From positions 434,001 to 498,000 of the forward strand of contig OZ025708.1 of assembly GCA_964019335.1 (NCBI GenBank): a DNA stretch of 64,000 nucleotides, read 5' to 3'. Positions 16,351 to 59,342 of this stretch are shown piece after piece. Made by a program: the position numbers and the translations under genes. Each line of letters starts with the position of its first letter. The first letter of the stretch is position 1. Below the pieces are notes generated by a model. The model did no database searches, was not told the origin of the DNA, and was given only the letters and a program-made list of their open reading frames with translations. The DNA comes from Diplonema japonicum (Eukaryota; Protista; Euglenozoa: Diplonemea).

Positions 16351-16406
16351 ATACCTTCTCGGCCTTTTGGCTAAGATCAAGTGTGGATCTGTTATCAGCT
16401 TAATAT
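16351..16406 (+). pseudogene. U2: U2 snRNA 5' fragment (truncated, altered branch-point pairing region)
   Basis: ATACCTTCTCGGCCTTTTGGCTAAGATCAAGTGTGG-ATCTGTT---ATCAGCTTAATAT aligns with canonical U2 CUUCUCGGCCUUUUGGCUAAGAUCAAGUGUAGUAUCUGUUCUUAUCAGUUUAAUAU. No Sm site or 3' stem-loops are recognisable downstream. Confidence 0.8.
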
Positions 16407-16440
16407 ATTACTTGTGCAGGGCGCCACCAACACACACTGG

Positions 16441-16523
16441 CTTTCTTTGTCTCTTATATTATTTCTTCTTTTTCCTTTTTGTGCTCTTTCATTCACATCT
16501 CTCTATCAATAATCACCATTCAG
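16441..16523 (+). promoter_or_regulatory. Polypyrimidine tract + AG: candidate SL trans-splice acceptor of the giant gene
   Basis: Long C/T tract ending ...CACCATTCAG (16523), 84 nt before the ATG. Similar tract+AG sites precede other genes (e.g. 2993, 9291, 59317). The function is inferred. Confidence 0.5.
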
Positions 16524-16606: not shown

Positions 16607-19600
16607 ATGCATCGCCCGTTGATGATGCTCTCGCTGACGGCGTCGTGCCACGCCACCTTCTACAACCAAGGAGTGCCCATGACACCCTTCCCAGACGTGA
16701 AGTGCTCGGACATCACTTTCACGCCTGGTGCAGGGTGCAACTGCAACACGGAGATCAGTGGCTCGGTGGTGGACGTGGAAGACGGCTTCGACCCTGCCAC
16801 GGACACGCTCACCTGCGGGGCGTGTGCCGGGCTGGGAATCACCCCCAACTTCGACACCACAACAGGCATCCTGCAGATGTCGGGTGCCGCCACCATCGAC
16901 GAGTACGCACAGGCCATCGCCAGCGTCACCTTCACGTCGACGTCGGGAGCTGGAACCTCTCGCCGTCTGACCTACAACTTCGGCCACGCCATGTACTCCA
17001 CGCACACGGGGCACTTCTACGAGTACTACCCGAAGAACAGCGTGAACTGCAACACGGGGGGTTTCTGCCACTGGGACGACGCGCAGTCTGAGTGCGCCGA
17101 CAAGTCAAAGGACATCCTCGGCCTTGCAGGCTACCTCATCACCATCACTTCGCAGGACGAGCAGGACGTCGCCTCAACAAAGCTGCACGGGGAGGGTTGG
17201 ATCGGTTCGGCGGACATCGCGAAGGAAGGGGAGTGGCGCTGGCTGACCGGTCCGGAGGGTTGCCCCCCTTATAACCTTGCTTTGACGGGGGCGGCAAGAA
17301 CCGCGTGCGACATGGGTTATCCCCTTCCCGAGAACAAGAACCCGTGCACCGGACCTGACTGCGGGCAGGGACAGCTCATCGGAACTGGCAAGGGGTCAAG
17401 CTTCAAGACCGCTTCGGGGGCCTACGAGAACTGGGAGTCAGGTGAGCCGAACGAGTACTCCAAGGACTGCTCGCCGGCGACGTGCTCGACGACAGGAGAA
17501 GACTACGGGCACTACTACGGGAACGGAAAGTGGAACGACTACCCGAACGGGCACAACCGCATCGAAGGCTACGTGTGCGAGTGGGGCGGTGTGGGGGAGC
17601 TCTGCATGAAGGATGACGACGTGTTCGGCTCGCAGATCGTGGTGGCCGGATGCGACTCCTACAAGAACCGAGGGGCGTGCGAGGCCCGCCTCCCCGCCGA
17701 CTCCTGCAAGTGGGACACAACACAGAGCCCCGCGAAGTGTGTGGAGACCGGGTGCCACCGCTACGGGGACGAAACAACCTGCGAAGGCGACGTGACGTGC
17801 GACTGGGACACGACGAAGAGCCCACCTGAGTGCGTGGACAACTACTGCGCGGTGACGCACCTCACGGAAGCGGACTGCAACGCCGACAATACCGCCGACG
17901 GCCCGTGCTACTGGAACACCAACATTCCGGGGGACCAGAAATGCCAGACCCTCGTCTGCGCCGACGTGACCGACAAGTGCAAGTGCATCCAGTCCTCCCC
18001 CCAGTGCCAGTGGGATTCCTCGAAGGGAAGCTGCCACAACCCCAGCATCACAAATACGGCGGTCTGTGGGGACCTGAACACGGAAACCGCGTGCATGGCG
18101 GACACCACCTGCAACTGGGACACCTCGAAAACCCCCTTGTGCCAGCTGTCTGAGTGCTACCCGCTCTGCACGCAGCTCACCTGCGTCGCGAAGGCCGGGT
18201 GCGCTTGGGACGGAACCGATTGTCGAAGGGAGCCCCCTGGCTGCGCTGCACACACGAATGCCGCCGCGTGTCAGCAGGATGAGAAGTGTCTGTGGAACGT
18301 TATGTGGAGCACTGCGAACACGTGCGTGGAGAACCCGTGCAGAACACACACCGACCAGCAGTCTTGCACCGCCGTCGCGGTAGAGATGCCCTCTCCGTGC
18401 ACGCCGCCCGCCGGGAACCCCGACTACTGCTTCCTCAACGTGTGCGACTTCGACTCTACGAAGACGCCCACCTGCTACCCGAAAGACTGTCTGCAGACCT
18501 CCGAGGGGACGTGCTTGGCCGAGTCTGGGTGCCAGTGGGTCCCCCTCCAGACCCCTCCTCCTGTCGGCCCTCCGTCGACCCTTGTTGAGTACTGCACGGA
18601 AGAGAAGTGCAAGCACACCACGGTGCAACTCTGTGAGAACGACCCATACTGCAAGTGGGACGACCAGCTGACGACCTGCGTGGAAGCACCCTGCCCCAAG
18701 CACCCCGACGAACTGTCGTGTGACCAGGACAATGTGTGCCACTGGGACGCTTCAACCAGCCCTCCGATCTGCACTCCGACGGAGTGCGGTGTGCACACGA
18801 CACAGGGAACCTGCGACACAAACACGAACTGCATGTGGGACGGAAGCTCAACCCCGGCCCACTGCACGGCCGCCACCTGCGAGAAATACAACGCACCGAG
18901 CCCCAGGGACAAGTGCGGGTGCGTGGCAGACCCCGAGTGCTCCTGGGTTGTGGACACAACTGGCTCCGGCAACGACCACTGCGCGAAGACCTCGTACTCC
19001 ACATGCCCCGACCTGGACGTTGCCTTTGTGATTGACGGATCAGGCTCTATGTCGAGGTCCTTCGGGAACCACCCGCACGGCTTCTACGGGCTGTTGGAGA
19101 CCCTGAGGGACTGGGTGAAGACGCTCCCCCTCACTGGGGAGGACCACACGGTTGGTGGTGCCTCGAACGTGAAGGGCGGCGGGTTCCGTCTCACTTTTAT
19201 CCAGTTCTCGAGGGCAGAGGCGACGCCTGCGATGGACCATCCCACGAACTGCGCGGTGGGCCAGTGCACGGACGGTCTCCTCTCCGGTAACATCAATGAG
19301 TTGATGGGCGACATCGACTGGCACGAGGCGAACTACCAGGCACACTGGACCTACCTCCACGATGCTCTCCTGGACGTGGCGGACCACACCTTCCTCCCCA
19401 GCCAGTCCCCTTCGCACAGGAAGCACGTGGTGGTGGTCATCGCTGACGGTGGTCTCACTGATTACGACGGTGACGCGTGCAGCGGTACCTCCTGCGGGCA
19501 GTGCCCCAGCGGCTGCGACTCGCAGTGGAAGCCCACCTACCCGGGAATGCTGGACGACGCGCAGCAGAAGCTCCGCGACGAGGATGTGGTGGTGTTCGGG

Positions 19601-49600: not shown

Positions 49601-52600
49601 TGTTACTGGGACACATCCTTCGATGTGAATGGTGGAGCTTGTGTGTCGGGTTCCTTTGGTGGCTGCCCCCTGATGGACGTGGTGGTGCTGGTGGACGGGA
49701 CGACCTCCATGAAGAGTGCCTTCGGGCGCCACGCCAGCGGCTATCAGGCGGTGATGGAGTTCCTCCGAGACTGGGCCAGAACGCTCCCCCTGTCTGGGGA
49801 CTCTGGGAAGGTCGCAGCGTCTGTGAAGGTGGACGGCGGTGTGCGCTTGGGGGTTGTGCAGTTTGCTGCCCAAGGTCGTGCGACGAAGACCGGCCCCACG
49901 GTGGGGAGCGGCGGTCACGTCACCGGCATGCTGTCCGAGCTTGAAGCGGATTTGGATTATCAAGAGGCAAAGATGATTGACACCAGCGACGCATACATTG
50001 CGGGGGCTCTGCAGTTGGCGCAGGCGATGTTCACAAGGCCTGAGAGGAAGAAGGTGCTCATTGTGATTTCTGACAGCATCGTCATGGATGCTGGGAGGGC
50101 TGAGGTGAACGCTGCTGTGAGCTCCCTGTTTGGCGCTGGTGTGAAGGTATTCGGTGTGCTGCTGCGCCCTGCTGCTGCCTTCCCCTCGACGGCAGGGGAC
50201 GCGAGGGACGCGATGCTCAACGTGCTGAGCGACGTGCGGGACGAGCACTTCTTGGACGCCCAGATCGAGGATTTGAAGACGATTCTGGACACCCTGTGTG
50301 ACCCCTCGAAGCAGTTCGGGCACCTGATTGCGTCGGCCGAGGGTGGTGCCGGTGCCCTGAAGCCGAAGCAGCCTTGCCCCATGTACTTCGAGAAGAACGT
50401 CTGCAACAAGGACGCGGCTTGCAGGTGGAGTGCTTCCCTCCTGGTGTGCTCCGACTCGGCGTGCGTCCGCCACTGCGATGAAGATGTCTGCAAGGCGGAC
50501 ACTTCGAACCTTTGCAAGTGGGATGCCACCGAGCAGATCTGCTTCAAGAAGCCCATCTGCGACCACCCGATCTCGGAGTGCGCGGCAGACCCCGGCTGCG
50601 AATGGAAGGCCGCGGACTCTGTGTGTGTGGAGAAGGAGTGCCAGCACCAAGCGGAATCCGGCTGTTTGAGCGACCCTGTGGGCTGCATCTGGGACAGCCA
50701 GACGGACCACTGTCTGCCGCGCCCGTGCATTTACACCGCTGAACAGGCTTGCAACCTGGACCCCACTTGTACGTGGGATGCGGCGATTGTTGGAACGCAG
50801 GCGTGGGCTCCGTGTGTGGAACAGCCTTGTACCACCACTAACCCCACAGAGTGTTTGAAGGACAGCAGGAGGTGCCAGTGGGAGGCGAACAAGTGCACGG
50901 TGAAGCCGTGCGTGCAGTACCTGGACGAGAAGACCTGCGACCACGACGAGGCCTGCCACTGGGATGTCAGCGAATCCCCGACGATCTGCAGCGAGAAGTA
51001 CTGCAGGAAGATGAAGTCGGAGGGGTTGTGCAACGACAACGCGAAGTGTGCTTGGAACAGCGGCGACAGCCTCTGCAAGGAGGTGGTGTGCTCAGACCTC
51101 GCAGACCAGTGCGCGTGCAACGAGAGAGAACTCTGCACGTGGGACAAGCAGAGCACCGTCTGCAAGAACGTGGACTTCGGTGGTTGCCCCTCGATGGACG
51201 TCGCCGTTGTGTTCGACGGGTCTGGTTCGATGAGCCAGTCCTTCGGGCGCCACCCGCACGGCTTCTACGCTATGATCGAGTCTCTGAGGGACTGGTTCAA
51301 AACCCTGCCCCTGACGAAGGAACCCGCCGGGACTTCGGCGCCGGCCCCGGGTGTGAGGGTCGGCCTCATCCAGTTCTCCGCCCCCAACGGCGCTCTGAAG
51401 ACGCCGCCTGGAACAGGCACGGGCGGCCGCTTCTCTGGGAACCTGGCAGAGCTGCAAGTGGACCTTGACTGGCACGAGGCCAACTACGCCATGCAGCAGA
51501 CCTACATCTCAGAAGCCTTGAGCTTTGCGGGGTTGATGTTCCAGTCGGCAGCTGCCAGCGGCAGGGCAAAGATCCTGCTCATCCTGACGGACGGAAAGAT
51601 CCACGACGCCTCGCAACTGAGCACGGCAAGGGCGGTGTTAGACGGGCAGGGCGTGCAGACCTTCGGTGTGGTGCTGAGGAGGTTCGACCAGCACACGCAG
51701 ACAGACATCGATGCGGAGGAGGTGCTCTCGACCATCGTGTCGGAGCCGAGGGAGGACCACTACATGAACATCCCGCTGGACGACTTCTCGGAAACGGTGC
51801 TGAAGGATTTCTGCGACCCGAACAGCAAGTTCGGGGAGATCATACTGGCCTACCAGGGGGCGACGGGGGCTGGACACGTGCCATGCGGTTCGCACAACGA
51901 GGCGGCGACCTGTTGGAAGGACGGGCAGTGCTTCTGGAGCGATGTTGAAGTGGCGTGCCAGTGGAGCTCGTGCCACAAGCACTGCTCGCAGGAGGTCTGC
52001 GAAGCGAGTAAGGACGAACAGGACAAGGCATGCGCGTGGACCGACGGCTGCGGGAGGACCGTTGAGTGCACGCAGACGACGGAGAATGCGTGCAAAACAG
52101 CAGAGTGCTTCTGGGACACAACGACGGACCCGACCTGTGTGGTGATGCCGTGCACGGCGACCTCGGAGGACGGCTGCGTGGCAGACCCCCACGGGTGCGA
52201 GTGGGACGACGTGACCCACGTCTGCAAGGTGAAGGAGTGCAACGACAAGACGCAAATGCCGTGCGACGCAAAGGCGATCTGTGAGTGGGACGGCGCGATC
52301 GACCAGTGCGTGGAGAAGCCGTGCGTGCCGTACACAACGCAGGCAGAGTGCGAGAAGCACTCGTTCGACTGCAAATGGGAAGGCGATGCCTGCAAGGTAG
52401 TAAACGGGTGTGTTGTCTACACGAACGAGAAAGAGTGCAACACGGACGCCAGCGGTGACTGTGAATGGAAGACTGCACACTCGCCTGCCCACTGTGGTGT
52501 GAAGGTGTGCAGGACATACGGAACGGAGGCAGACTGTGAAGCGGCGGACAAAGGAGCCGCGGATGGCTGTGCCTGGGACAAGACCAAGATGAAGTGCGAC

Positions 52601-55600
52601 GAGGGTGTGATCCTCTGCAAGGGCGAGACAGCACCGTGCTCATGCGGCCAGATGCCCGGGTGCATGTGGGACACGAGAACCTCGAAGTGTGCGGCGTCGA
52701 TGTTTTCGAACTGCCCTGCGGTGGACATAGTGATCGCGATCGACGGGTCCCTCAGCATGGGCGAGCGCTTCGGGCGCCACCCGCACGGCTTCTTCGCGGT
52801 GTCAGAGATGGTACTGGACCTTGCGAAGACGCTGCCGCTGTCGGGAGAGGCGGCGGGTGTGGCGAGCGATGCGTCGTTGCCCTCAGGCTTCCGTGTCGGC
52901 ACGGTGCAGTTCTCTGCGCAGAGAGAGGCGATGAAGGCTCCTGCTGGGACTGGGACCGAGGGCAGGCTATCTGGTGTGCTTGCAGAGATCGACGCCGATG
53001 TGCACTGGCACGAGGACCTGTTCACGTCGCACGCGACCGACGCTTCGTACCTCACGCAGGCGATGGAGATGGCTGCGAAGATGTTTGATAGCTCGCCTGC
53101 AGACAGGAAGAAAGTGCTGTTGGTGGTCGCTGATGGAGACATCCTGGACGCGGAAGCGAGCTCAATGGTGACGGTGTCTGGGCTATTGGAGCAGCAGAGG
53201 GTGCAGGTGTTCGCTGTTCACGTTAGACTGTACAACACGGCAAGCCCGCAGGACGAGAAGGACACTGCAAAGATGGAGGCTTTCGTGACCAGCCCGTCGA
53301 ACAGCCACGTGCAGGACGTGACAATGGAGGAGTTGGAGGATGTCTTCGCGAGCCTCTGCAACGAGAACAGCACGTTCGGCTACTTCCTCTCCAAGCACGG
53401 GGAGTCTGTGCACAAGAGCAGCTGCTCAGAGTGGGCGATACTGGCAGGCTGCGAGGCAGACAGCTCTTGCATGTGGAGCGCGGTGAAGAGCGCGTGCACG
53501 GCGAGCCCGTGCGTGCAGCACTGTGCCCAGGAGGAGTGTGAGGCGGACGTCGCGAACATGTGTGGCTGGGACGGTGCCTCGTGTTCCAGAAAGGTGTGTG
53601 CCTACACTGTGAAGGACAGCTGCGACGCGGTGCAGGGCTGCAGGTGGTCCACTGGTGTCACTGGTTTGGAGGAGTGCAAGCCTGAGGTAGGGTGTCCCGC
53701 CAAGTACACGTCGGAAAAGTGCGTGACCGACGTGAACTGCAAGTGGGATGCCAGCGACAGCCAGTGCAAGGAGAGGCACGGCTGCGTGGTGTACACCTCC
53801 CTCCCGGAGTGCAACGCAGACGGGGAGTGCGCTTGGAACACCGCCACCGCGCAGTGCGAGGACAAAACCGGGTGCGCTGTGCACATTGCCGAGATGACCT
53901 GCACCCCAGACAACGAGTGCACGTGGGATGCCATGAGCAATGTGTGTGTGGAGAAGAACTGTGCGTACTACAAGGATGCGGTAGCGTGCGAGGCACCGGG
54001 GGTTGGTGGTGCCTGCAAGTGGAACACCACGGACGGTAAGTGCGTGGAGGTTGAAGGTTGTGCTTCGTACAACGCCGAGGCAGCTTCGGCACAGGCCAAC
54101 TGCAACGACGACGTTATGTGCCAATGGAAAGAGAACACTTGCGTGGACAAGACCGGGTGCGCGAGGTACATTGCTGAGGTCACCTGCGATAGGAACAAGG
54201 ACGAGAGCGGTGTGCAGTGCGCGTGGAACGGCACTACGTGCGAGCAGGCGAAGGGATGCGCGCGCCACACCGACAGCATAACGTGCCTCGGGAATACTGG
54301 TGAAAACTGCGACTGGTTCACTGGTGACGACATGGGCACTGGCGGAGAAGCGGTGTGCGCAGAGAAGTGTCCTGCCAGAACCTCCGCGCCTGTGTGTGTG
54401 GAACAGGCAGGGTGCGGTTGGGTGGACAACAAGTGTGCGAAACTGGGCTGTGCGGTGCACACGTTGAAGCAACCCTGTGACGACGACAGCAGGATCGGCG
54501 GGTGCGAGTGGCTGCCCGACCAGGGCAAGTGCGCACCCAAGAACCCCGGTGCGTGCATCATCCGAGACGAGGACTCCTGCGTGGCGGGGACCGGCTCTGA
54601 GAGAAACAAGTGCAAGTGGGTGGGGGCGAATGACGGGGAGGCGGCCCCTGGGCAGCAGGGCGGGGCATGCATCGTGAACCCGAACCATGGGAAGTGCGGC
54701 ACGGACAACAAGGGGTGCTGCAAATGCAAGCCTGGGTGGTCGGGTCTCGAGTGCAACTTGTGTGGGTTCGAGGAGTCGAGCGACAGGGAGACGTGCACGC
54801 TGTGCAGCAGGGAAGGGACCTGTTCGAACCACGGGAAGTGTGGGGAAGACAACCTGTGTGTGTGCGACGGCGGGTGGACGGGCGCAGACTGCAGCCTCCG
54901 AGGGTGCGCTGACGCGGCCCCCTACTGGTACACGGCTTACCCGAACCAGCCGCTGAAGGACCAGACCTTCAGCCTGATCATCCACGGATGCTTCAACGCG
55001 AGCAGCACGAAGGACCGCGTGGTACGCGTAGTGAACGCGACCGGGGACCCCTCCGAGGACTGCAAGCAGGCGCAGTGCACGGAGACAGAGACGAACAAGG
55101 CGCTGGTGATCGGCACCGGCGGGTGCATGAAGGCGGTGCAGCAGAACATGTCGTTGGTGGAGCCCGTGTCAGAGATGGAGCTGCTGGTGGACGTGAAGGC
55201 GACCTTTGAGGCAACTAAGAGCGAGAATGAGTACACCGTGTGCTGGTTTGACGGGACGGGCTTCAAGCCGCTTGTGACGCACGACCGCGACGGGAACAGG
55301 AAGGACACCATCAAGGTCACTGCCGAGGCAGATGCAGACACCGGTCTCATCACCGAGAAGGGCGGAAATGGTGGCGGCGGCGAGGAGTGCTGTGAGGGGC
55401 TGAAGCTGGGCGAGGCATGCCTCCCAGCCGCCCTGATCCTTGTTCTGTGGATCGTGATTGTGGCCCTCATCGCCTTCCTTGTCTTTTCCCTCATCAAGAG
55501 CCAGAAGGAGAAGGGCGACTTGGACGGCAAGTCCTACAACAAGAAATTCGATGACTTCGAGATGGAGGATGGGAACCGCACCATGCTCAGGGACGAGGAC

Positions 55601-55615
55601 AAAGAGGTCAACTAG
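16607..55615 (+). CDS. Giant (13,002 aa) single-exon type I membrane adhesin-like protein: signal peptide, beta-sandwich/C-type lectin heads, 18 VWA domains, Cys-Trp repeats, ~32 Ca-EGF-like repeats, EGFs, TM, 39-aa tail
   Basis: Uninterrupted ORF with strong GC3 bias. Hydrophobic N-terminus; C-type lectin with EPN (17444) and WND (17531); 18 hand-counted 'CPx(L/M/V)Dhhhh(h)DG(S/T/G)xSM' VWA starts from ~19010 to ~52715; tenascin-type EGF CSNHGKC...CVCDGGWTGADCS; TM AALILVLWIVIVALIAFLVFSLI (~55427-55495). Confidence 0.93.
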   Translation: MHRPLMMLSLTASCHATFYNQGVPMTPFPDVKCSDITFTPGAGCNCNTEISGSVVDVEDGFDPATDTLTCGACAGLGITPNFDTTTGILQMSGAATIDEYAQAIASVTFTSTSGAGTSRRLTYNFGHAMYSTHTGHFYEYYPKNSVNCNTGGFCHWDDAQSECADKSKDILGLAGYLITITSQDEQDVASTKLHGEGWIGSADIAKEGEWRWLTGPEGCPPYNLALTGAARTACDMGYPLPENKNPCTGPDCGQGQLIGTGKGSSFKTASGAYENWESGEPNEYSKDCSPATCSTTGEDYGHYYGNGKWNDYPNGHNRIEGYVCEWGGVGELCMKDDDVFGSQIVVAGCDSYKNRGACEARLPADSCKWDTTQSPAKCVETGCHRYGDETTCEGDVTCDWDTTKSPPECVDNYCAVTHLTEADCNADNTADGPCYWNTNIPGDQKCQTLVCADVTDKCKCIQSSPQCQWDSSKGSCHNPSITNTAVCGDLNTETACMADTTCNWDTSKTPLCQLSECYPLCTQLTCVAKAGCAWDGTDCRREPPGCAAHTNAAACQQDEKCLWNVMWSTANTCVENPCRTHTDQQSCTAVAVEMPSPCTPPAGNPDYCFLNVCDFDSTKTPTCYPKDCLQTSEGTCLAESGCQWVPLQTPPPVGPPSTLVEYCTEEKCKHTTVQLCENDPYCKWDDQLTTCVEAPCPKHPDELSCDQDNVCHWDASTSPPICTPTECGVHTTQGTCDTNTNCMWDGSSTPAHCTAATCEKYNAPSPRDKCGCVADPECSWVVDTTGSGNDHCAKTSYSTCPDLDVAFVIDGSGSMSRSFGNHPHGFYGLLETLRDWVKTLPLTGEDHTVGGASNVKGGGFRLTFIQFSRAEATPAMDHPTNCAVGQCTDGLLSGNINELMGDIDWHEANYQAHWTYLHDALLDVADHTFLPSQSPSHRKHVVVVIADGGLTDYDGDACSGTSCGQCPSGCDSQWKPTYPGMLDDAQQKLRDEDVVVFGIVMRRFSYHTFQDDNAEAKLKPLVTDPKDDHFMNLMLDEIPGQVLEPFCDPNSKFGKTLIPPIDAKHYQCATWGFKDECNADSLCEWKTPRLATCASATGCPELNCQGIPQQYKGLYDCSKCKLQRATVICGASVKSSIDGTCEETHCAKCCNETCCNADAACSWKTPGETCERKVCEYTDQSACENDPDLLCKWDGSKCDPKPCGSIFVQEKCLNSTNNCQWDTSLDPPVCKQIPTCDTKTDPAVCKSDPGCEWDCNSTTCRDTKCSYPDPGTCSVDTDCEWLGTMCKEKKCTPAKTQVDCKDCDNCVWDPASSTCTEDKCKPLNQADCGSSDVCHWDNNECVTDYCPQYKDDEVECGHDPRCHWDSATTPPTCQPTTCTKDHNTQYPGLGDAPSQMGTIDDAACTNDPGCKTGTDSKGPYCAPASCSDHTKNCDCVRDTNCYWDPAVTAPAPKCKDNKVSSCPDLDVVFVLDGSGSMGASFGSHPHGYYAMLEMLRDWVRTLPLTGEDNTFGINSAVTGGTFRIAFVQFSIENEYWVCRNGADGCSKWSNWGSCTQPRLPAGRICSNGQLTGELTELENDLDWHEANYMGSLTYMAAALDDAVDIFHGSPAHRAHVLVIITDGQMNPLEPQRSQEIPAIRQKLDAEGVITFGVVVRKTAAHTKADIDAEETLKPVTSDAHDDHFVNVPLDDMLTEVFNDFCDPAGRFGAAIRQQAQNQNSANNTAPPAQSAAVPCSKWGVKLECRSDQACDWKTPAPTSCPGNGCTNLNCLELPAAQVSAGMTCANCKLSGGAVSCTAGSSNPVGSGYCGATSCEEHCAEVPCEQDTANDCFWDTDKCQRKVCSYPDKNACEADPDAMCMWDTTATPAACVPKKCLHFTQGTCDVDGDCQWDPATQDCKEKDPDCTTITDKLDCLNHVSDACDWKCDTNTCVQKVCRETTSTACGNSVDGCEWDAGSNVCHKQHCVGASTENACISDGACKWTAATSTCAESKCYKFATEATCDHDTDCHWDPTGCEGCKEKYCYKTFTDDASCNADPKGTCMWDSTNNKCVDKTCDSYNNPAMGTDRMCDCQADSRCVVDRSVPTAPVCRDQHFTQCPDLDVVVAFDGSTSMNNRFGTHPNGFEGLMEALRDWVQALPLTGEAAGVTSTDTNGRVRVGFSEWDQGVRLAECPSCACSPSVGSDGDGIPTTSSMNTKGKTPPRPADNCGKLTGDKAQLLADLDWHEGEKRRPQTLVKEAEEFAGETFKASPAYRKKILLIFTDGMIQDRASLGPAGAVLAAEGVQTFGIVLTRGNPNFLDQQNLDALKEIVTDPKDSHALMMQIDEAHQVLDDFCNPNSVFGALITSGSTTQPNTEPACDTIQSIPDCMARSTCQWNSITVACEDHPCFKHCGETDCIADTTNQCKFNNGTLQCEKTVCKDHLSQQECIDNDCKWDAAKDPRCYEGPCQATDQAGCNNLGKQCTWDTTIQPDPKCVETPCYYDNQTACVADTDCEWDDVCPDDADQKCVPKRCTQPDHQTQAGCTKDTWCVWTSALTCELGKCAKYPTEKCCDHDDGCHWDISSNPPVCGEKYCPKTYPTVATKDQCDADSKCMWDPSKQACVEEDCSKLDTCPCRAHPDCYWDAAHSKCTDAKYGECPTMDVIMLMDGSGSMDAWFGNHPHGFYGLIEILRDWAKTLPLTGELAGTNTGPGPVTGGLRLGFVQFSGSNPWWIYSGKSEAIQTPSGTGTGGHLSGDLTEINDDLDWHENNYMGDGTMIEKGLTMVGDMFDASHQHAVRPRILIIFTDGKIYDPNSLGPARTVLDQEDVQTFGIVIRKQQAHTKADVDAEATLKPITSDPHDDHFQNLMLDEISTKVLGDICDPNGKFGHLIVTNSPSTQAGVHAPCPNHADSHLCNADPGCEWHAASDECQDSPCIAHCDEQSCVQDTANLCTWNGTECWKETKCAYTDQTQCVNSPDLCVWDNGVCVLPPCTPNKNQADCEADKDGCAWVNQNGQDMCIVEPCSSDYQSVCSSDPACKWDYPLCGNTSKLQCMPKGCDYLTVKGDCDGDVHCVWDAAASTCKDRVCAQFRDERCCDKDATCKWDVTTDPAVCSQKKCPAIQTQPKCDEQSDCMWNSTTNTCVDLDCSKFPDMCPCNQHDKCYWKPGAGFAGTGACVAVEFGECPTLDIVLVLDGSGSMSAKFGNHPHGFDALMEMMRDWIETLPLNGEDASVGINSKKDNGGVRVGIVQFSGWNNWRSEARKTPGGVGSGGRLSGTLQQLEDDVDWHEDNYMGDGTMIEEGLTMAADMFHASPVDGRQRVLFIFTDGQIYDPNSLSGARAELDKEGVQVFGIVVRKATQHTKADLDAEKTLKPITSDPHDDHFKNVMIDEVPDLMKGICDPNGPWGHLIVKDPPQPSSGVHLPCPDYQTQGTCKKDPGCIWSDVGSVCLNSPCLLHCNDSACQGDPNNNCTWVNGSICTKAPDPTCDCAYTTGDPVYNENMCKANAMCVWDAASSVCQHDECAAGQPGNLTCGAVNQLCMDPTPAPCTDDYYCDCVPPATRDPTTQPGQAAAVCVLDECAVDCPTCAGTTCSDKNQDCFDPTPTVSSLSDWTCTCKPPYTGVAVANAAVCQIDECKDQTCGTCAKNTCSDKNQTCHDPDTTVSNDWTCTCPPPANQSAVAAAASSCDFDECTIHKDTCENADQTCHDPDQSVTGDWTCTCKPPSNGTATAQVAWCELDECVKTCPSCANTTCTGENQLCDDPNKGSHSTGDWTCTCQNPFTGSATAAAAICKLDECSALCTGTSCANATCSNVNQTCHDPDFTKLGDWTCNCPPPSKQLPSPQQPVMGCEVNECDLHKAVCENQGQVCEDPDQLVADDWKCKCVPPMNGTATAQPAECTIDECVASCATCANDTCSSEGQTCEDPDTSMHSTADWTCTCPPPYTGVAIANSATCLLDECAANCTDPTCAGTTCSDKNQTCHDPDTTTLGDWTCACPPPSQKQPVVGAPVVGCEENECDKMKQICENVGQTCDDPDQLTPNDWECKCAPPMNGTGVAKPAECTVDECASDCVGPTCANATCSDANQVCNDPDTAVHSTGDWTCTCPSPYSGVAIGSAAICRIDECVQTCPTCADNACSNASQICNDPDTSNLGDWTCSCPPPAQKPSQVGGPVAPSCDVDECDLHKDTCESQQQTCFDPDQGKVGDWQCKCVPPMNGTATAQPAECTIDECVASCATCANDTCSSKSQTCEDPDTSMHSTADWTCTCPPPTTGKAVANSAECVIDECVETCGTCSNGACASEGQTCHDPNVAANSTGNWICTCQPPSTGFATGKAAIPCVVDECKDPDNEKKCADAGQECVDPNPSLGSRNDWECHCIVPPATKNASAVMNPADCEYPGECKTDPEAKKCVAAGHICDDPNTDPMSTGDWVCMCPPPSTGNNVTATSPGGVAGMVCETNECVVVCPTCAQTASSPTNLCTAEGQECRDPDTTRYGDWQCECPAPWTGTPVTGGAANCSLDECVANCPSCSNGACSDEGQTCEDANTGVHDLKDWTCTCPLPGVGSATAKPATCVCDECSEADQKCSAAGQICFDPNTDCNSKKDYTCECKAPYSGTATAQAATCEVDECKENNATCTAVGQVCNDPDMTKLNDWECKCPPPSTGMAVGQAADTCKLDECVETCNTCAGTTCSDADQTCADPNTDAASTGDWICTCKPPAANNSATGKPAVCICDECVGDTLCAAANQSCYDANTVCNTPSDFVCECEPPMIGNATGSVATCSLDECEINGATCVAQGQECNDPDHTKVGDWECKCKPPSVGNATAQAAECVYDECKIQDCPTCANDTCSAAAQDCEDMNTSPTSTSDWVCKCPPPSNHTATGKVAVCDLDECKEPANAGKCTEMCVPGTLDCGQTCYDPDPTTASTGDWECLCPPPATGKMVAGPVVHCTYNECDEKETVCAAEGQGCEDTNQQTLNDWVCECLPPATGNATVRPARCLLDECKVQNCPTCANDTCSSVGQECEDPDTTATSTGDWVCKCPLPSTHEATAKPAVCEIDECDEPQNNCTANCVAPNTPNCEQTCFDPDTSPNSLGDWTCSCPPPTSGKAVAQAAMCTVDECVEHGATCTAEGQTCRDLNTSKLNDWECVCTAPAKGSAFAQKVKTCVLDECVEDCDTCSKNTCTDAGQTCEDPNTSESSKSDWICKCPSPSTNTATGKPATCEVDECKENGWKCTADCKGALNCAQQCFDPNTNTTSLDDWKCVCQPPSTDSAVAKAAICTVEPCIHDNEPACDQDPDGCEWSLLPTPVCKPIPCQHTKEVDCKAETGCEWLVYSGASTNAGTGAVSYEVLMPVKPFPAVATCDASCSCAAQNAVFVRVGDGYVNGKDSLTCGGCAAVGVTVNWQAAGGSLTVSGGAGVSGDNLAEIVASIEFTTSSTDGGKRSLSWNFGTVLDTAATATACGGVVDLVGGVCVTEKCDYGTDAECEADPFCDWVGGTTDPCVIAPCVLYPNEKECSKDPDCRFDVSSSPAMCKEKPCRAFKGSVECDAEDECMWNATQTKCVEKECSKFNDDRCQCHAEDRCYWDVRSTVPKCVESKYGQCPVLDVVMLLDGSGSMSEAFGRHPHGFYAMMEMIRDWVNTLPLTGEDHTVGKASTAPNGGLRMGIIQFSGPVPEAVKTPVGVGSSGSLTGDLTELQGDIDWHEANYIQGSTFIATGLNWAGTMFQFSPSTRQKVLIIVTDGAIKDTASLASAKAVLTAEGVKIFGVVLRKAAAHTQEDLDAEAALKPITSDPHDDHFMNVLIDDMPDQVLNGICDPNSKWGQLLMPGASSENQAGMHKPCPQHLVQMECTADPGCVWSSVGLSCVDSPCVAHCDSTKCTADTVNHCQWKVVNGTTDPSCWVETICAYNDETSCEADDECDWDASKPDCVERPCNQQTETECEADPKGCEWTAATKTCAEKPCKHTVEADCSADALCEWDACAGVAGGGACQKKSCDPTVFTDEVSCTKDARCQWVSGVTGFTCAQEPCAIHSGERCCNTEADCHWDISVSPAQCSVKYCAKMNANQAKCDSDSQCVYEGSSCVEKECGKLAECECRKDADCYWNGDKSFCTPFQFGQCPTLDLVLLLDGSGSMSQAFGRHPHGFDAIMEMVRDWVTTLPLSGEKGIVGVNSQANSGKVRVGIIQFSGVNAQGADPGRADAQATPAGIGSSGSLTGDLAELNTDIDWQETNYYGGGTMIAKGLTDVAQMFHASPNDGRQRVLIIITDGQIFDPDTQAVLQARGELDKERVQVFGVVVRKATAHTAIDDLAEQTLKPMVSVPKDDHFQNLMIDEVPTLVLGEICDPNGKFGRLVVGTNGSSSTGVNKPCKQHTLMGACNADPGCAWYDATLSCADTPCMQHCEEIPCRNDTANKCAWDSTKGLCQKEPQVGCDSLSMGECPKNPKCEVSKDNTTCVDKKCLHDTEQGCVTDPDKCVWNNIDQECTEKPCNHPDEATCENDALCDWNNGNNPLSYSKGVKMSPLNLTCNPTTTCMNGCAGLINGAAVSIDSADYVKGKDTLECAGCPALGMKTEWSVETGSLLLTSMDGQEKSLEKFTEALNQVTFATTSAAGNPRGITWNYGQGVYDARTGHYYRYYASNTVCQTTGGATTAGCTWEDAKQACAAKAFLGLSGYLMTASTDLDTEVARGRIAAEGWMGASATNGAWTWSTGPEAGTALNSYENWMTGEPSAVNGDGYFFPNGEWSSVAKTSDKAVLGYACEWGTTSGPACTGSVGSVIVNAGGCAEEKCTETSRTECVADPYCDWVVNTTACVQKPCTDVMEELPCNKKEGCHWSPSISPAMCVEEPCAKLKDTPTCNADNNCVWEDGKKMCVEKNCNDLSKCLCVEDPKCFWKAAGTSGSCVKNTYGACPTMDIVVLVDGSQSMSQSFGHHPHGFFALMEMLGDWIQSLPLSGEAATVGAASQANSGKVRVAVVQFSGHPQFFSPPNTWSGPVVESVAVSPVGVGTAGRLSGASAELKSDVDWHESNYLEAGTYIAKGLKRASTIFTSSSPVDGRQRVLMIFTDGMIEDAGTDKDIMVQARQDLDGLSVQTFGIVVRRFAQHTQTDVDAEATLKPIVSAPQDEHFMNLQIDEVPDQALNGLCDPNGPWGHLIVAPQTTQAGVHQPCQNYLGKTTCVADKGCTWSDVLTSCLDSVCVPHCDQPTCEGETSTKCVWDGSLEECFKKPVCQYSDKVNCNNDEECKWDSNKCIEKPCNYPDETSCIADTGADCVWSTVTKKCSEKPCNYNNTADCGADGGCQWEDTCKEPEDQMCIVKPCMHSNETACKEDVMCAWNASGCAVATCAHYPDEKCCNRDDGCYWNVQQAPAVCSQHPCRLLGSEGTCNADRNCMWEGGSSTCLEKSCGKYTTRCPCEADPDCFFVVGSNHCTFQRYGTCPTLDVVVLLDGGVSMERKFGRHPQGFYALVEVVRDWARTLPLSGSAAGATPANNNAVRLAFVQFAGSSLWPSGDAKQALSSTGTGTSEGRLTGVLSEVEKDLEFQEDNFMGGNAARQPAPQTTYLLAGLQKASSLFKAGPVDGRRRVLIVVADSPLDDKDKYQTVMADLAASQVEVFAATVRPFTAQSAGDLQADADLKEVVSDPKDGHFVSVEIDQLAASLNGLCDPNSQWGGFIAATAVDREPCNLRVGKTACNKDSGCVWFDTTLSCGDSPCLTHCEAPVCVADTANRCVWNGASCEKEEVCKHPDLVACEADPECEVDKGTCIGKKCKHDTEQGCVADPDSCVWNNLDQACGEKPCNYDNLDQCVLDLKCEWKSLVPECLPKLCTYGNQTACETTEPGMCVWESTDDKCVPAPCKQYQSEIECKLDEGCDWTSECEPKYCERYAGDAGACDSDGLCMWDETKKKCVDKECGAFQNDTCRCHKDADCFWDKGVCKTAKFGECPTLDIVLAVDGSASMTQTFGRHPHGFYGLMEVLKTWTGKLTLSGEKAGTPTTALTGKTRIGVVQFSGKPAIKIPGKDLVDGAQKTPTGTGSGGRLSGDRAEVDADLVWQETNFMEGGTYIAAALDVSADMFQASPRDGRKRVLLIFTDGQIQDADKLVDARKRLEQEEVITFGIVVRRFDAHTQTDIDAEATLKPITSEPHAEHYYNLLLDEISDTLDGLCDPNSMWGKYVVETAQAGVHKPCGNYNEKEACNEDVGCAFRDVLAACVDTPCIKHCSEGLCANDTANKCFWKADESVCYKEEGCSKYKNDGDCGVDTTCAWREDKCVDKPCDYPDENSCTADSTYDCEWSSKDGTCTEKPCQYTEEAGCKGDAKCLWDVACIGTGIPAMCVRKPCDHPTAVECSSDTSQCEWSGTACAMKTCTAYVDERCCNANEKGEGCHWDVKQSPAVCSVDPCRVYGSENACNSERACMWEGTKCGEKDCNKLTDKCACEADPDCFYSTAPGKPHCTFQRYGTCPTLDVVVLLDGGVSMERKFGRHPQGFYALVEVVRDWAQTLPLSGEAAGAASAQNSQAVRLAFVQFAGSESWAPSDSRQALTATGTGTSEGRLTGSLSEVEADLTFQEANFMGGSLLTQPTPQTTYLLAGLQKAVSLFRTSPVDGRKRVLIIVTDDELDDADKHQTARAELDQAQVQVFGVVVRPFDTHTTLDEKAQQTLQPLVSDPKTGHIVNVQVDEIAASLNGLCDPNAAWGKYVGVVAEGRQPCQLHSLKDPCNKDAGCVWFDATLSCADSPCLEHCDGAECAADTVNLCQWNGTVNSCGKEEVCSYPEPSECGVNTECEWKNNVCIGKECKHDNEQGCLADPAVCVWDNVKQDCKKKPCVYDNMDSCNLDLECSWNVDAVECEVKKCNYGNQTACETMEPGMCVWETSPDKCVPAPCKQYGNEKLCMADDSCEWSTAIAPGTCEVKYCRKYCNMETSICNEDECNQDPACLTEPATSICKKKECGMLRDQCACHKEPDCFWLSGERTCVDQKYGTCPTLDLVVVFDGSASMSQVFGRHPHGFYGMVEMLRAWVGGLPLSGEKAGAPVTTGPTSRKIRVAFVQFSGVATAPLTTTPIAGSAIKTPAGVGAAGRLSGDFAELSADLDWHEANYMEKGTYVNLGLQMAASILSSSPTDGRRRAVYVITDGQLQDQAYLEDVKGKLDSVSAEVFGIVVRRFASHTKVDTDAEEALKPITSSPHDKHFVNVDMDELASSSGPLTQLCDPATDFGSSIAMGVAGGKHQPCNAYATKKDCMKDVGCAWNQLSCGTSPCVMHCNETTCNQDVVNECVNGWDSTDETCYREAVCAGSTVTTCVAETGCQWNGSTCEVKPCYHTSEDGCIADTEYVCEWKQSECGVKPCVMHTDALACTGDTTGCVWNSSTSKCTPVKCTPYNIKDECKADVLCQWEEVGSRCVVRPCVEYADDRSCDADKKCHWDTTAAPGSCQLKPCARYENETTCGLDTGCKWDGTEQVCVKKTCHTIPGKCECQQDAACFWSTAGGHARCEEQVFGKCPTLDAVLVLDGSGSMSQSFGRHPHGFYAMMEMIRDWVKTLPLSGELSSVGPSSAAATGGVRLGLVQFSGEPNSVNPATGGVVNSAQRTPPAVGSGGRLSGDLAQLESDITWHEDNYMAQLTFIEEGLNMAANMLTNDSPLDGRRRIVIIITDGVLMDGDRLTTVRAKLQQLQVITFGIAVRRFNAHSAEDDAAEAALKPVVSEKEDDHFMSLTMDEIPEEVLSGLCDPNSKWGKFVSAADGGSSGTGNGTVPCAQLDGKITCNRNTGCVWSDTTLSCGATPCYDHCDQASCDGDVDNHCTFETATQGCTKKPPCSYTAAPECSKDAECMWENGNNKCVEKPCQHEDEEPCLLDTEGCVWDSVEKKCTPEPCQRQTTKVGCDDLADICVWDTAGQNGDVCKPKRCVSCPAGNQTCCESAENKIWCDYTAGNTCVEKPCVGYVDELSCSSATESQCEWDPTTSPGMCKEKYCAKFNETTCDLEPACAWDFGTCDTKRCEDVHEHCSCTTDPSCFWHDGTCVDVHYGACPTMDIVVLLDGSGSMTQSFGRHPNGYFALIEMLKDWVYLLPLPGDIGAAGKDPTKYAPGSARVAIVQFSGDKNLAGASSALVSTDGAKGRLSGYVPELRQDLSFQEHNHMAKDTFLNEALDMAAGLFSGPLYPVDGRRRIVLVLLGSPVLDESMLSGPLGKIQAIGAHLVGIVVRRSDSHATLDNDAAASLEPIVTEPTEAHFKNVAIDNLKEEVFDKWCNPNTPWGSWLVDLKATDSHLPCSFHSGSPECNRDSGCAWDDGLVACTVTPCLQYCSKALCEDLSDPAYRCQFNVTGDSTCTKEKICAYADEQGCMADYECTWTMNRCEPTPCQHHTEPACVSDLVGCEWADDKCTVKKCLYTTPENCTNSDGECEWDPTASVCGPKTCTHTTEKECTDDVKCDWENPTCKKKKCVEHLEEGSCISEAGCEWEVDTSPAYCKETYCHRWTAEANCNLDAACAWDGSICVPSTCMRNNGKPCDCAADPSCFWVESRKSCVEAAFGACPPLDIVVLFDGTESMEGAFGRHPNGFDAVMEMLKDWVKSLPLNGDSYIVPKTSASTAGIRVAFVQVGSNVQPMLVTSPTNPATPSAAGLLSGDMNQLLGDLAFHSANMLGGNGRYMENAVKHAETALSSQSPTTRKQVVLMLTSGKVSDEDKLKLAMATLDPTVQVFGATVRRLSTRTSEDNAAADQMKTLVSVTHAEHFLDLEIDELNEKVFSALCDRTKTFGAAMLKDSVLVSSGTNNQPCSTYSVAGNCRADTGCVWSESLLQCTAHPCRSHGCDQTACTTDTACDWTQEGSCYKKPPTCPSQQTQPTCEAVTENGGCAWVMVDVNVYRCVEKPCVGHQAEDSCITDPNVCEWNSKTSECTKKECTYPTEQECTSAPEVCEWSVDHCKKQRCTAVDEAVCVTDDACEWDTVCKFKKCRQYDDEQTCDHDDQCHWDVSESPSKCDVKVCLRYTSEGACETDPELRCSWDATNNKCANKDCSEITTPCPCNKDLGCYWDTSFDVNGGACVSGSFGGCPLMDVVVLVDGTTSMKSAFGRHASGYQAVMEFLRDWARTLPLSGDSGKVAASVKVDGGVRLGVVQFAAQGRATKTGPTVGSGGHVTGMLSELEADLDYQEAKMIDTSDAYIAGALQLAQAMFTRPERKKVLIVISDSIVMDAGRAEVNAAVSSLFGAGVKVFGVLLRPAAAFPSTAGDARDAMLNVLSDVRDEHFLDAQIEDLKTILDTLCDPSKQFGHLIASAEGGAGALKPKQPCPMYFEKNVCNKDAACRWSASLLVCSDSACVRHCDEDVCKADTSNLCKWDATEQICFKKPICDHPISECAADPGCEWKAADSVCVEKECQHQAESGCLSDPVGCIWDSQTDHCLPRPCIYTAEQACNLDPTCTWDAAIVGTQAWAPCVEQPCTTTNPTECLKDSRRCQWEANKCTVKPCVQYLDEKTCDHDEACHWDVSESPTICSEKYCRKMKSEGLCNDNAKCAWNSGDSLCKEVVCSDLADQCACNERELCTWDKQSTVCKNVDFGGCPSMDVAVVFDGSGSMSQSFGRHPHGFYAMIESLRDWFKTLPLTKEPAGTSAPAPGVRVGLIQFSAPNGALKTPPGTGTGGRFSGNLAELQVDLDWHEANYAMQQTYISEALSFAGLMFQSAAASGRAKILLILTDGKIHDASQLSTARAVLDGQGVQTFGVVLRRFDQHTQTDIDAEEVLSTIVSEPREDHYMNIPLDDFSETVLKDFCDPNSKFGEIILAYQGATGAGHVPCGSHNEAATCWKDGQCFWSDVEVACQWSSCHKHCSQEVCEASKDEQDKACAWTDGCGRTVECTQTTENACKTAECFWDTTTDPTCVVMPCTATSEDGCVADPHGCEWDDVTHVCKVKECNDKTQMPCDAKAICEWDGAIDQCVEKPCVPYTTQAECEKHSFDCKWEGDACKVVNGCVVYTNEKECNTDASGDCEWKTAHSPAHCGVKVCRTYGTEADCEAADKGAADGCAWDKTKMKCDEGVILCKGETAPCSCGQMPGCMWDTRTSKCAASMFSNCPAVDIVIAIDGSLSMGERFGRHPHGFFAVSEMVLDLAKTLPLSGEAAGVASDASLPSGFRVGTVQFSAQREAMKAPAGTGTEGRLSGVLAEIDADVHWHEDLFTSHATDASYLTQAMEMAAKMFDSSPADRKKVLLVVADGDILDAEASSMVTVSGLLEQQRVQVFAVHVRLYNTASPQDEKDTAKMEAFVTSPSNSHVQDVTMEELEDVFASLCNENSTFGYFLSKHGESVHKSSCSEWAILAGCEADSSCMWSAVKSACTASPCVQHCAQEECEADVANMCGWDGASCSRKVCAYTVKDSCDAVQGCRWSTGVTGLEECKPEVGCPAKYTSEKCVTDVNCKWDASDSQCKERHGCVVYTSLPECNADGECAWNTATAQCEDKTGCAVHIAEMTCTPDNECTWDAMSNVCVEKNCAYYKDAVACEAPGVGGACKWNTTDGKCVEVEGCASYNAEAASAQANCNDDVMCQWKENTCVDKTGCARYIAEVTCDRNKDESGVQCAWNGTTCEQAKGCARHTDSITCLGNTGENCDWFTGDDMGTGGEAVCAEKCPARTSAPVCVEQAGCGWVDNKCAKLGCAVHTLKQPCDDDSRIGGCEWLPDQGKCAPKNPGACIIRDEDSCVAGTGSERNKCKWVGANDGEAAPGQQGGACIVNPNHGKCGTDNKGCCKCKPGWSGLECNLCGFEESSDRETCTLCSREGTCSNHGKCGEDNLCVCDGGWTGADCSLRGCADAAPYWYTAYPNQPLKDQTFSLIIHGCFNASSTKDRVVRVVNATGDPSEDCKQAQCTETETNKALVIGTGGCMKAVQQNMSLVEPVSEMELLVDVKATFEATKSENEYTVCWFDGTGFKPLVTHDRDGNRKDTIKVTAEADADTGLITEKGGNGGGGEECCEGLKLGEACLPAALILVLWIVIVALIAFLVFSLIKSQKEKGDLDGKSYNKKFDDFEMEDGNRTMLRDEDKEVN
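27103..32390 (+). repeat. ~32 tandem ~55-aa Ca-EGF-like coding repeats within the giant ORF
   Basis: Consensus (D/N)EC-x(n)-C-x4-Q-x-C-x-DP(D/N)-x(4-6)-DW-x-C-x-C-PPP-x2-G-x-A-x4-A-x-C, counted by hand from HDECAAG to VDECKENG. Confidence 0.85.
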
Positions 55616-59220: not shown

Positions 59221-59342
59221 AGTTTTTTTTTCTCCCATTTCCCTTTTTTACCTGTCTCCTTCTTCCTTCCTTTCCCCCCAATCACCCCAAAAAAAAACAT
59301 TTTGAACACGCCGACAGCTTGAAAAGAAAAAAGAGGAAAAAA

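Follow-up and report, generated by a model that had tools for sequence, protein, structure and literature searches.

A single-exon gene of Diplonema japonicum predicted to encode a 13,002-residue lectin- and VWA-bearing surface protein, a plausible giant adhesin

The giant gene and its predicted domains

The window analyzed here, a stretch of 64,000 nucleotides from the diplonemid Diplonema japonicum (assembly GCA_964019335.1, contig OZ025708.1, forward-strand positions 434,001 to 498,000), contains a giant gene that runs on the + strand as a single open reading frame (ORF) from its ATG at 16607 to its stop at 55615, with 13,002 codons and no internal stop. The encoded protein has a calculated mass of 1,395,692 Da, an isoelectric point of 4.5, 1,141 Cys residues (8.8%) and 78 N-glycosylation sequons; its composition is mostly Cys, Asp and Thr within folded repeats, and no mucin-like Ser/Thr/Pro-rich stretch was found in it. 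The GC content of the frame is 0.60-0.65, versus 0.43-0.50 in its flanks. Because about 3% of random codons would be stops at this composition (~0.03 per codon), a frame of 13,002 open codons cannot be due to chance (probability ~e^-380). Of the single-exon protein-coding genes known from eukaryotes, this is one of the largest. A preliminary description of the window had drawn it as one ~39-kb exon for an 18-VWA transmembrane adhesin of ~1.4 MDa, and its map proved right in every detail that can be counted: the uninterrupted frame, the mass, the VWA domains in groups of 5, 2 and 11, the 32 EGF-like units, the transmembrane helix and the 39-residue tail. The parts are listed below, with positions in the window.

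16607..55615, + strand: whole single-exon coding sequence, 13,002 residues plus stop (ORF; paralogues and colinear relatives)
16607..16654, + strand: putative 16-residue signal peptide MHRPLMMLSLTASCHA, with a hydrophobic core and small residues at -3/-1 (judged by eye)
16655..17020, + strand: pre-lectin module of head 1 (residues ~17-138), repeated at residues 5317-5437 and at the start of head 3
17021..17641, + strand: C-type lectin domain of head 1 (residues ~139-345), with an insert of ~48 residues (Pfam Lectin_C, PDB matches)
17627..18994, + strand: N-terminal Cys-rich repeat region (residues 341-796; self-similarity to the inter-VWA linkers)
18995..26746, + strand: VWA domains 1-5 with Cys-rich linkers (residues 797-3380; Pfam, self-built profile)
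27098..32383, + strand: 32 tandem units of ~54 residues resembling calcium-binding EGF (cbEGF) domains (residues 3498-5259; self-profile, motif, weak EGF scores)
32555..32917, + strand: head 2, pre-lectin module only (residues 5317-5437; 36% identity to residues 9-134, E 5e-17)
33338..35572, + strand: VWA domains 6-7 with linker (residues 5578-6322; self-built profile)
36080..37219, + strand: head 3, pre-lectin module and C-type lectin-like domain (residues 6492-6871; similarity to head 1, alignment A3)
37259..53359, + strand: VWA domains 8-18 with Cys-rich linkers of ~300 residues (residues 6885-12251; self-built profile, AlphaFold2 module, fold Z ~20)
53360..55414, + strand: C-terminal Cys-rich repeats, two EGF_2/Teneurin-type EGFs and a membrane-proximal domain (residues 12252-12936; Pfam, self-similarity)
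55415..55495, + strand: single transmembrane helix (residues 12937-12963), the sole 19-residue window with a Kyte-Doolittle mean above 3
55496..55612, + strand: 39-residue cytoplasmic tail with the conserved motif FDDFEMEDG (sequence)

We counted the VWA domains with a hidden Markov model (HMM) built from one copy and iterated on the giant protein itself. It found exactly 18, starting at residues 797, 1459, 2095, 2635 and 3161 in the first group, 5578 and 6095 in the second, and 6885, 7410, 7915, 8432, 8952, 9468, 9994, 10499, 11017, 11524 and 12033 in the third. Their spacing is 505-540 residues (1.5-1.6 kb), except for the first two gaps of 662 and 636 residues (~2 kb), as had been described. 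When the protein was scanned in 1000-residue pieces, Pfam VWA (PF00092) matched every piece except residues 4001-5000, with 38-96 bits against a cut-off of 23.8. The full metal-ion-dependent adhesion site (MIDAS; DxSxS, T, D), through which integrin I domains, TRAP and CMG2 bind an acidic side chain of the ligand via Mg2+/Mn2+, is kept in 13 of the 18 domains. The 18 copies share only 31-70% pairwise identity, indicating an old array that assembles without ambiguity, with no recent repeat to be miscounted.

Modeling of a single module, which the preliminary description had proposed as a check along with a domain scan, gave a confident result. The AlphaFold2 model of one VWA domain plus linker, computed from 58 modules of five paralogues (alignment A4), has a mean predicted local distance difference test (pLDDT) score of 87.5 and ~90 over the VWA part. 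Modeled residues 1-230 adopt the VWA fold (Foldseek 4e-9, target TM-score 0.7-0.78, Z 17-21) and align with the I domains of integrins alphaM, alphaX, alpha1 and alpha2, with CMG2/TEM8, collagen VI and mussel PTMP1, and also with P. falciparum TRAP, T. gondii MIC2 and the VWA domains of bacterial LapA-type adhesins; the best sequence match of the unit is integrin alpha1 (2.7e-6). Modeled residues 240-517 are predicted to form about ten small units, each a six-residue helix and a beta-hairpin with four Cys and a conserved Trp (consensus C-x7-C-x2-D-x2-C-x-W-x6-C-x3). This linker repeat matched no Pfam model even at E 5 and nothing in the Atlas, and fold searches with the whole module were taken up by VWA matches and hence say nothing of the linker fold; a likeness to a PSI domain would be no more than conjecture. 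Given its high model confidence, the VWA-plus-linker module could probably be expressed and studied alone.

The three heads follow the order that had been proposed: lectin, lectin-less, lectin. Head 1 (residues 17-345) consists of a ~120-residue module and then a C-type lectin domain, for which Pfam Lectin_C (PF00059) scored 25.7 bits (cut-off 22.6) and the phmmer matches were the carbohydrate-recognition domains of CLEC4F, CD23, mincle and DC-SIGN. Profile A3, built from heads 1 and 3 of six paralogues, matched CLEC10A and NKG2D in the PDB with both halves of the domain (E ~1e-6); residues 137-202 and 254-308 were aligned on CLEC10A, with the EPN of head 1 (residues 280-282) falling on the QPD of CLEC10A and its WND (residues 309-311) on WND. 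In animal C-type lectins, EPN and WND form Ca2+ site 2 and select sugars of the mannose/N-acetylglucosamine (GlcNAc)/fucose type. The GEPN and WND of head 1 are kept in all six paralogues, and EPN/WND also in P0009, a relative from another species. Self-similarity of head 2 extends to the pre-lectin module only. Head 3 is similar to head 1 (29% identity, E 1e-50) and reads EPS/WSS in place of EPN/WND, which marks its lectin motifs as degenerate. From these alignments, heads 1 and 3 are assigned C-type lectin domains and head 2 none.

The pre-lectin module found no assignment in Pfam, NCBIfam or the Atlas. A possible resemblance to bacterial T1SS-143/cadherin-like repeats was dropped, as NCBIfam returned no match and the Atlas nothing usable. 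At the very N-terminus, the putative signal peptide had also been called by the preliminary description; MHRPLMMLSLTASCHA, followed by TF, aligns with the clearer signal peptide MRSLVLLSAAAVASA of a relative, P0001, and likewise with that of P0009.

The EGF-like array comprises exactly 32 units by self-profile, with the consensus CxxDEC...C...QxCxDP[DN]...DWxCxC. They resemble the six-Cys cbEGF pattern (a D-x-[DN]-E-C start and a C-x-[DN]-x(n)-[FYW]-x-C-x-C core), with a start one residue shorter than the classical motif. Pfam EGF gave E 0.02 (15.6 bits, cut-off 21.5) and a profile of 29 units gave E 0.4 for fibrillin in the PDB, so that the number of calcium-binding EGF-like repeats proposed earlier stands, whereas their identity is a matter of motif, the profile scores not being significant. 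Towards the C-terminus, EGF_2 and Teneurin-EGF gave two weak matches near residues 12,733-12,763. In the tail, 12 residues are acidic and 9 basic, and none is Trp. Its motif recurs as YDGFEMEDG in Rhynchopus and YADVDMEGG in Namystynia, each with a homologous transmembrane helix.

A family of paralogues and its diplonemid relatives

The preliminary description had treated the gene as a single one. A six-frame search of the D. japonicum genome (62,535,345 bases, 132 contigs) showed instead that it is one of a family, with giant ORFs carrying the VWA-plus-linker module at 12 loci: C61 (the window), C64 (two), C63 (two), C5, C111 (two), C11, C14, C99 and C30, plus a short fragment on C113. Five regions besides the window were read, and the copies on C14, C99, C11, C30 and C113 were characterized by six-frame matches only. 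Besides the window gene, intact frames of 12,990, 13,002, 12,986, 13,023 and 13,142 residues (the last twice) were found, making seven intact frames of 12,986-13,142 residues and six distinct sequences. All share the start MHR..SL.ASC and the tail FDDFEMEDGNRTMLRD. Amino acid identities of the paralogues to the window protein are 93.3, 86.8, 82.4, 81.5 and 75.0%. At roughly 12 × 39 kb, the family fills ~0.75% of the genome.

The ratio of nonsynonymous to synonymous divergence (dN/dS) is 0.08-0.24 in 14 of the 15 paralogue pairs and 0.40 in the other, with dS of 0.4-1.2; it is below 0.3 in every region, and the heads and VWA domains are the most constrained. By this comparison, the family is under purifying selection. 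The DxSxS pattern at each VWA position is also largely constant across the six paralogues, with VWA 9 and 11 reading DGGVS in all of them.

These data bear on two other explanations. One is that the frame is an artefact, several genes misjoined by the assembly, or a dead gene or untranscribed relic. Some irregularities in the family would suit it: a partial copy on C64 (146719-166413, + strand; 6,533 residues from the common start codon) ends at a 200-N scaffold gap, facing a full copy on the opposite strand (174889-213891) in what looks like an unresolved inverted pair, and the two 13,142-residue paralogues on C111 (71608-111084 and 116990-156466, - strand; 45,382 bp apart) have nucleotide-identical coding sequences, reflecting either a very recent tandem duplication or one made by the assembly. 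However, seven full-length frames have the identical order of parts, dS reaches ~1 with dN/dS of ~0.1 across all 39 kb, the internal modules are only 31-70% identical, and RNA-derived contigs from other genera keep the colinearity for upwards of 6,000 residues. Intact paralogues, dN/dS and module divergence together exclude misassembly and pseudogeny far better than a single check of reads could, and we consider an artefact or relic very improbable. The gene is thus genuine, selected and single-exon, and is predicted to encode a type I transmembrane surface protein of ~1.4 MDa. A further copy, on C11 (approximately 765843-805500, + strand), lies in two ORFs of 4,578 and 8,524 residues with one frame break or stop, and is either a pseudogene or a sequence error.

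The other explanation is cell-cell recognition in aggregation, in mating or among kin, each paralogue being an alternative specificity. A set of large surface proteins that are encoded by many genes and 75-93% identical could serve this purpose, and some Diplonema species are reported to aggregate (PMC5845003). Purifying selection acts everywhere in the giant genes, though, and most strongly on heads and VWA domains. Self/non-self loci usually show the reverse, making such a role distinctly improbable. The lack of diversification in the heads speaks neither for nor against adhesion.

Very long antisense ORFs also occur within the giant gene (39086-42661, - strand, 1,191 residues; 28958-32404, - strand, 1,148 residues) and within a paralogue (C63:395297-409798, - strand, 4,834 residues). 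They are most simply explained as a by-product of GC-rich codon usage, not as genes.

In order to find relatives in other organisms, we searched 1.84 billion representative proteins with a profile of 15 modules and obtained 944 matches at E <= 1e-3 and 150 at E <= 1e-30, the longest among the 150 having 7,575 residues. All named matches are diplonemids: Rhynchopus euleeides, R. humris, Diplonema papillatum, D. ambulator, Flectonema neradi, Namystynia karyoxenos, Artemidia motanka and Hemistasia phaeocysticola. Because every named relative is a diplonemid, the earlier suggestion that the protein was assembled within this lineage fits. Long stretches are colinear with the window protein: residues 305-6936 of R. 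euleeides transcript P0154 with residues 5441-12992 (36-40% identity), D. papillatum P0007 with residues 6735-10649 (49%), P0001 with residues 460-3531 (48%) and Namystynia P0006 with residues 8467-12993 (39%). Several relatives are Trinity RNA assemblies, with transcripts encoding up to 6,951 residues, indicating that other species transcribe homologues, seen as contigs exceeding 20 kb. In all, colinear relatives are present in at least nine diplonemid species besides D. japonicum.

The public models and transcripts of D. papillatum, R. euleeides, R. humris, Namystynia, Artemidia, Flectonema and Hemistasia are true homologues, colinear at 39-49% identity and with the same transmembrane helix and tail motif; all are fragments of 2,000-7,000 residues with automatic names, and none is full-length. 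The D. papillatum models include KAJ9442392.1 ('Halomucin'), KAJ9444039.1 ('Neurogenic locus Notch protein') and KAJ9471018.1, others being 'hypothetical protein'. Diplonemid annotations therefore split such giant genes into pieces with misleading names. Our literature search found no paper joining diplonemids with von Willebrand, and the papers on diplonemids and lectins were all irrelevant; the D. papillatum genome paper does not mention VWA, Willebrand, lectin, Notch or adhesion, and the locus tags of the public fragments appear in no searchable paper. As far as this search shows, the family is undescribed in the searchable literature, and the statement in the preliminary description that no protist adhesin of this architecture has been described survives it.

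The head module itself, pre-lectin plus C-type lectin, is reused in other large ORFs of the genome (C29:454641-467752, C9:48817-49290, C35:401251-418194, C13:706216-714643 and C102:172851-173699). The ORFs that reuse it have 4,125, 8,600, ~1,900 (three), ~600 (three) and 2,212 residues. This sequence reuse suggests that the genome encodes further lectin-bearing surface proteins beyond the giant family.

Comparison with known systems and proposed function

The preliminary description had compared the protein with the apicomplexan gliding adhesins TRAP and CTRP, a family that is secreted from micronemes, translocated rearward and shed by rhomboid proteases. The likeness is partial. As in TRAP, CTRP and MIC2, we find a protist type I protein with MIDAS-bearing VWA domains, one transmembrane helix and a short acidic tail, and the VWA model matches P. 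falciparum TRAP (Z 19.2), P. vivax TRAP (Z 17.1) and T. gondii MIC2 (Z 17.4). Yet no thrombospondin type 1 repeat (TSR; Pfam TSP_1) appeared in any scan covering the whole protein, and the tail lacks the (sub)terminal Trp that couples TRAP/CTRP tails to the glideosome. CTRP has 6 VWA domains, 7 TSRs, a transmembrane helix and a tail, and members of the TRAP family have 1-6 VWA domains, versus 18 in the giant protein, which is ~6 times as long as CTRP, also has C-type lectins, cbEGF-like units and a Cys-rich stalk, and comes from another supergroup. Since it has no TSR and no tail Trp and belongs to a different supergroup, the giant protein is not a TRAP/CTRP member.

In both sequence and fold, the VWA unit is matched best by integrin alpha I domains and CMG2/TEM8, which share the DxSxS...T...D signature kept in the 13 complete domains. 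Unlike integrins, the giant protein has its VWA domains in a tandem array with Cys-rich linkers, and the Pfam scans gave no FG-GAP or integrin family: neither a beta-propeller nor thigh/calf parts or a beta subunit was found. Metazoan matrix proteins and lectins (matrilins, collagen VI, AMACO, SVEP1/polydom, selectins) have a common domain vocabulary of VWA, cbEGF-like and C-type lectin domains; the VWA model matches collagen VI with Z ~20, and EPN/WND occur as in collectins and DC-SIGN. However, the order, number and size have no counterpart there, the linker repeat lacks a Pfam model, collagen triple helix, coiled coil, sushi and pentraxin are absent, and the lineage is unrelated to animals.

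In its working logic, the giant protein most resembles, by analogy, the megadalton RTX adhesins of bacteria. MpIBP of Marinomonas, LapA and the Aeromonas large adhesion protein likewise exceed 1 MDa, are anchored at one end and have a long extender of repeats together with sugar-binding and VWA modules; the VWA model matches LapA with Z 18.1 and the Aeromonas adhesin with Z 17.6. The giant protein differs in being eukaryotic and disulfide-rich, in having a transmembrane anchor instead of an outer-membrane pore, in carrying binding modules along its whole length and not only at the tip, and in lacking RTX repeats and Ig-like extenders. The family is thus built of familiar domain types, but their arrangement and its size are without precedent.

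What these parts might do can be sketched from their known relatives. The ectodomain of ~12,900 residues would form a long, rigid-looking, disulfide-stabilized stalk of roughly 150-200 small Cys-rich helix-hairpin repeats and the 32 cbEGF-like units, holding out 18 VWA and two C-type lectin domains on a filament that, if extended, may reach a few hundred nanometres (a rough figure from usual domain sizes). The membrane-distal lectin, with its EPN and WND, would bind sugars in a Ca2+-dependent manner, and the thirteen MIDAS-complete VWA domains would offer many cation-dependent binding sites. Joining such a lectin with 13 such VWA domains suggests a multivalent tether dependent on divalent cations, which could fasten the trophic cell, be it gliding or sessile, to prey, detritus or a substrate rich in glycans; the tail motif, which is conserved, would link the tether to a cytoplasmic partner. 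We infer adhesion, gliding or prey capture from the domain content, which makes an adhesin plausible. Taken as a whole, a very long, multivalent, divalent-cation-dependent tether on the cell surface is the best explanation, and one that we favor by a little more than even chances. It would fit the biology of D. japonicum, whose trophic stage is large and glides and whose starved cells are sessile (PMC13598402).

Several points weigh against this explanation. The signal peptide is weak and was called by eye. The AlphaFold2 model of the head (11 sequences) was unusable at pLDDT 38.7, leaving the lectin assignment to sequence comparison, and the EGF identity comes from the motif. Five VWA domains (9, 11, 14, 15 and 16) lack a full MIDAS, and VWA domains also build non-adhesive matrices, e.g. 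in collagen VI and matrilins. Finally, continuity and expression of the window copy are judged from comparative evidence.

The matrix role of VWA domains leads to a less probable, but serious, alternative: a structural protein of the cell coat or extracellular matrix, with VWA domains mainly binding each other or other coat proteins in a protective, hydrated glycocalyx instead of gripping external ligands. The fit of the VWA model to collagen VI and PTMP1 equals that to integrins, the protein is acidic and has many sequons, ~12 nearly equivalent paralogues would be in keeping with bulk structural use, and D. papillatum relatives carry the automatic name 'Halomucin'. The complete sugar/Ca2+ motif set of the distal lectin speaks against a coat, as does the absence of mucin-like stretches, and the conserved tail motif suggests coupling to the cell interior. 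The coat, like the recognition role above and the uptake role below, draws on parts common to the tether.

Surroundings of the gene and wider meaning

The recognizable genes of the window are all on the + strand, as is expected of the unidirectional gene arrays of euglenozoans. They encode an oxysterol-binding protein, an ART-domain protein, a CRAL/TRIO protein, a GH27 enzyme, the giant protein, an LVIVD-repeat protein and an AA10 lytic polysaccharide monooxygenase (LPMO). The features nearest to the giant gene are as follows.

9358-10650, + strand: GH27 alpha-galactosidase (Melibiase_2 and Melibiase_C), 6 kb upstream of the giant gene
16351-16479, + strand: element resembling U2 spliceosomal RNA (RF00004; 45.3 bits versus a gathering threshold of 46, E 7.5e-8), 130 nt upstream of the ATG
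59319-60989, + strand: 556-residue ORF between the giant gene and the LPMO, hydrophobic in an N-terminal segment and matching the LVIVD repeat (PF08309, 26.2 bits)
61580-62404, + strand: AA10 LPMO (PF03067, 157 bits; Pfam) with a Cys-rich C-terminal module

The U2-like element resembles U2 in its 5' ~60 nt only, the remainder being pyrimidine-rich; at the gathering threshold Rfam found nothing in the window, and the window holds no tRNA.

An LPMO gene lies within ~5 kb of the giant gene at 4 of ~12 loci (C61, C11 and both on C111, where it is ~4 kb upstream of each paralogue), and the other giant loci are without one. The genome has at least 50 LPMO copies, and we rejected as too weak the idea that giant gene and LPMO form one system.

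These neighbors bear on another function, that of a receptor for prey or particles at the feeding apparatus, with lectins and VWA domains capturing bacteria or polysaccharide and the tail directing endocytosis or phagocytosis. EPN-type lectins of animals (collectins, DC-SIGN) recognize microbial glycans of the mannose/GlcNAc type, the relatives from Rhynchopus and Namystynia have a Y-x-x-hydrophobic form of the tail motif, and secreted carbohydrate-active enzymes are encoded nearby (the GH27 enzyme, and the AA10 LPMO at the loci just named). The corresponding tail sequence of D. japonicum is FDDF and not Yxx-hydrophobic, however; an ectodomain of perhaps half a micrometre would make an odd receptor; and LPMO adjacency is weak evidence because of the at least 50 copies. 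We regard an uptake receptor as unlikely.

The tether remains the explanation that we prefer. A broader picture, which we hold to be doubtful, would have lineage-specific proteins of ~13,000 residues, without counterpart in other organisms, form surface filaments of perhaps half a micrometre; through glycan binding that depends on Ca2+ and through MIDAS-dependent binding, these would be the main means by which diplonemids grip and glide on marine particles, algal walls or prey, with the linker as a new small disulfide-rich fold and with some loci combining attachment and degradation through LPMOs. Diplonemids rank with the most abundant of the ocean's heterotrophic protists, and this conserved, strongly selected family of giant lectin/VWA proteins offers a concrete and testable candidate for such behaviors.

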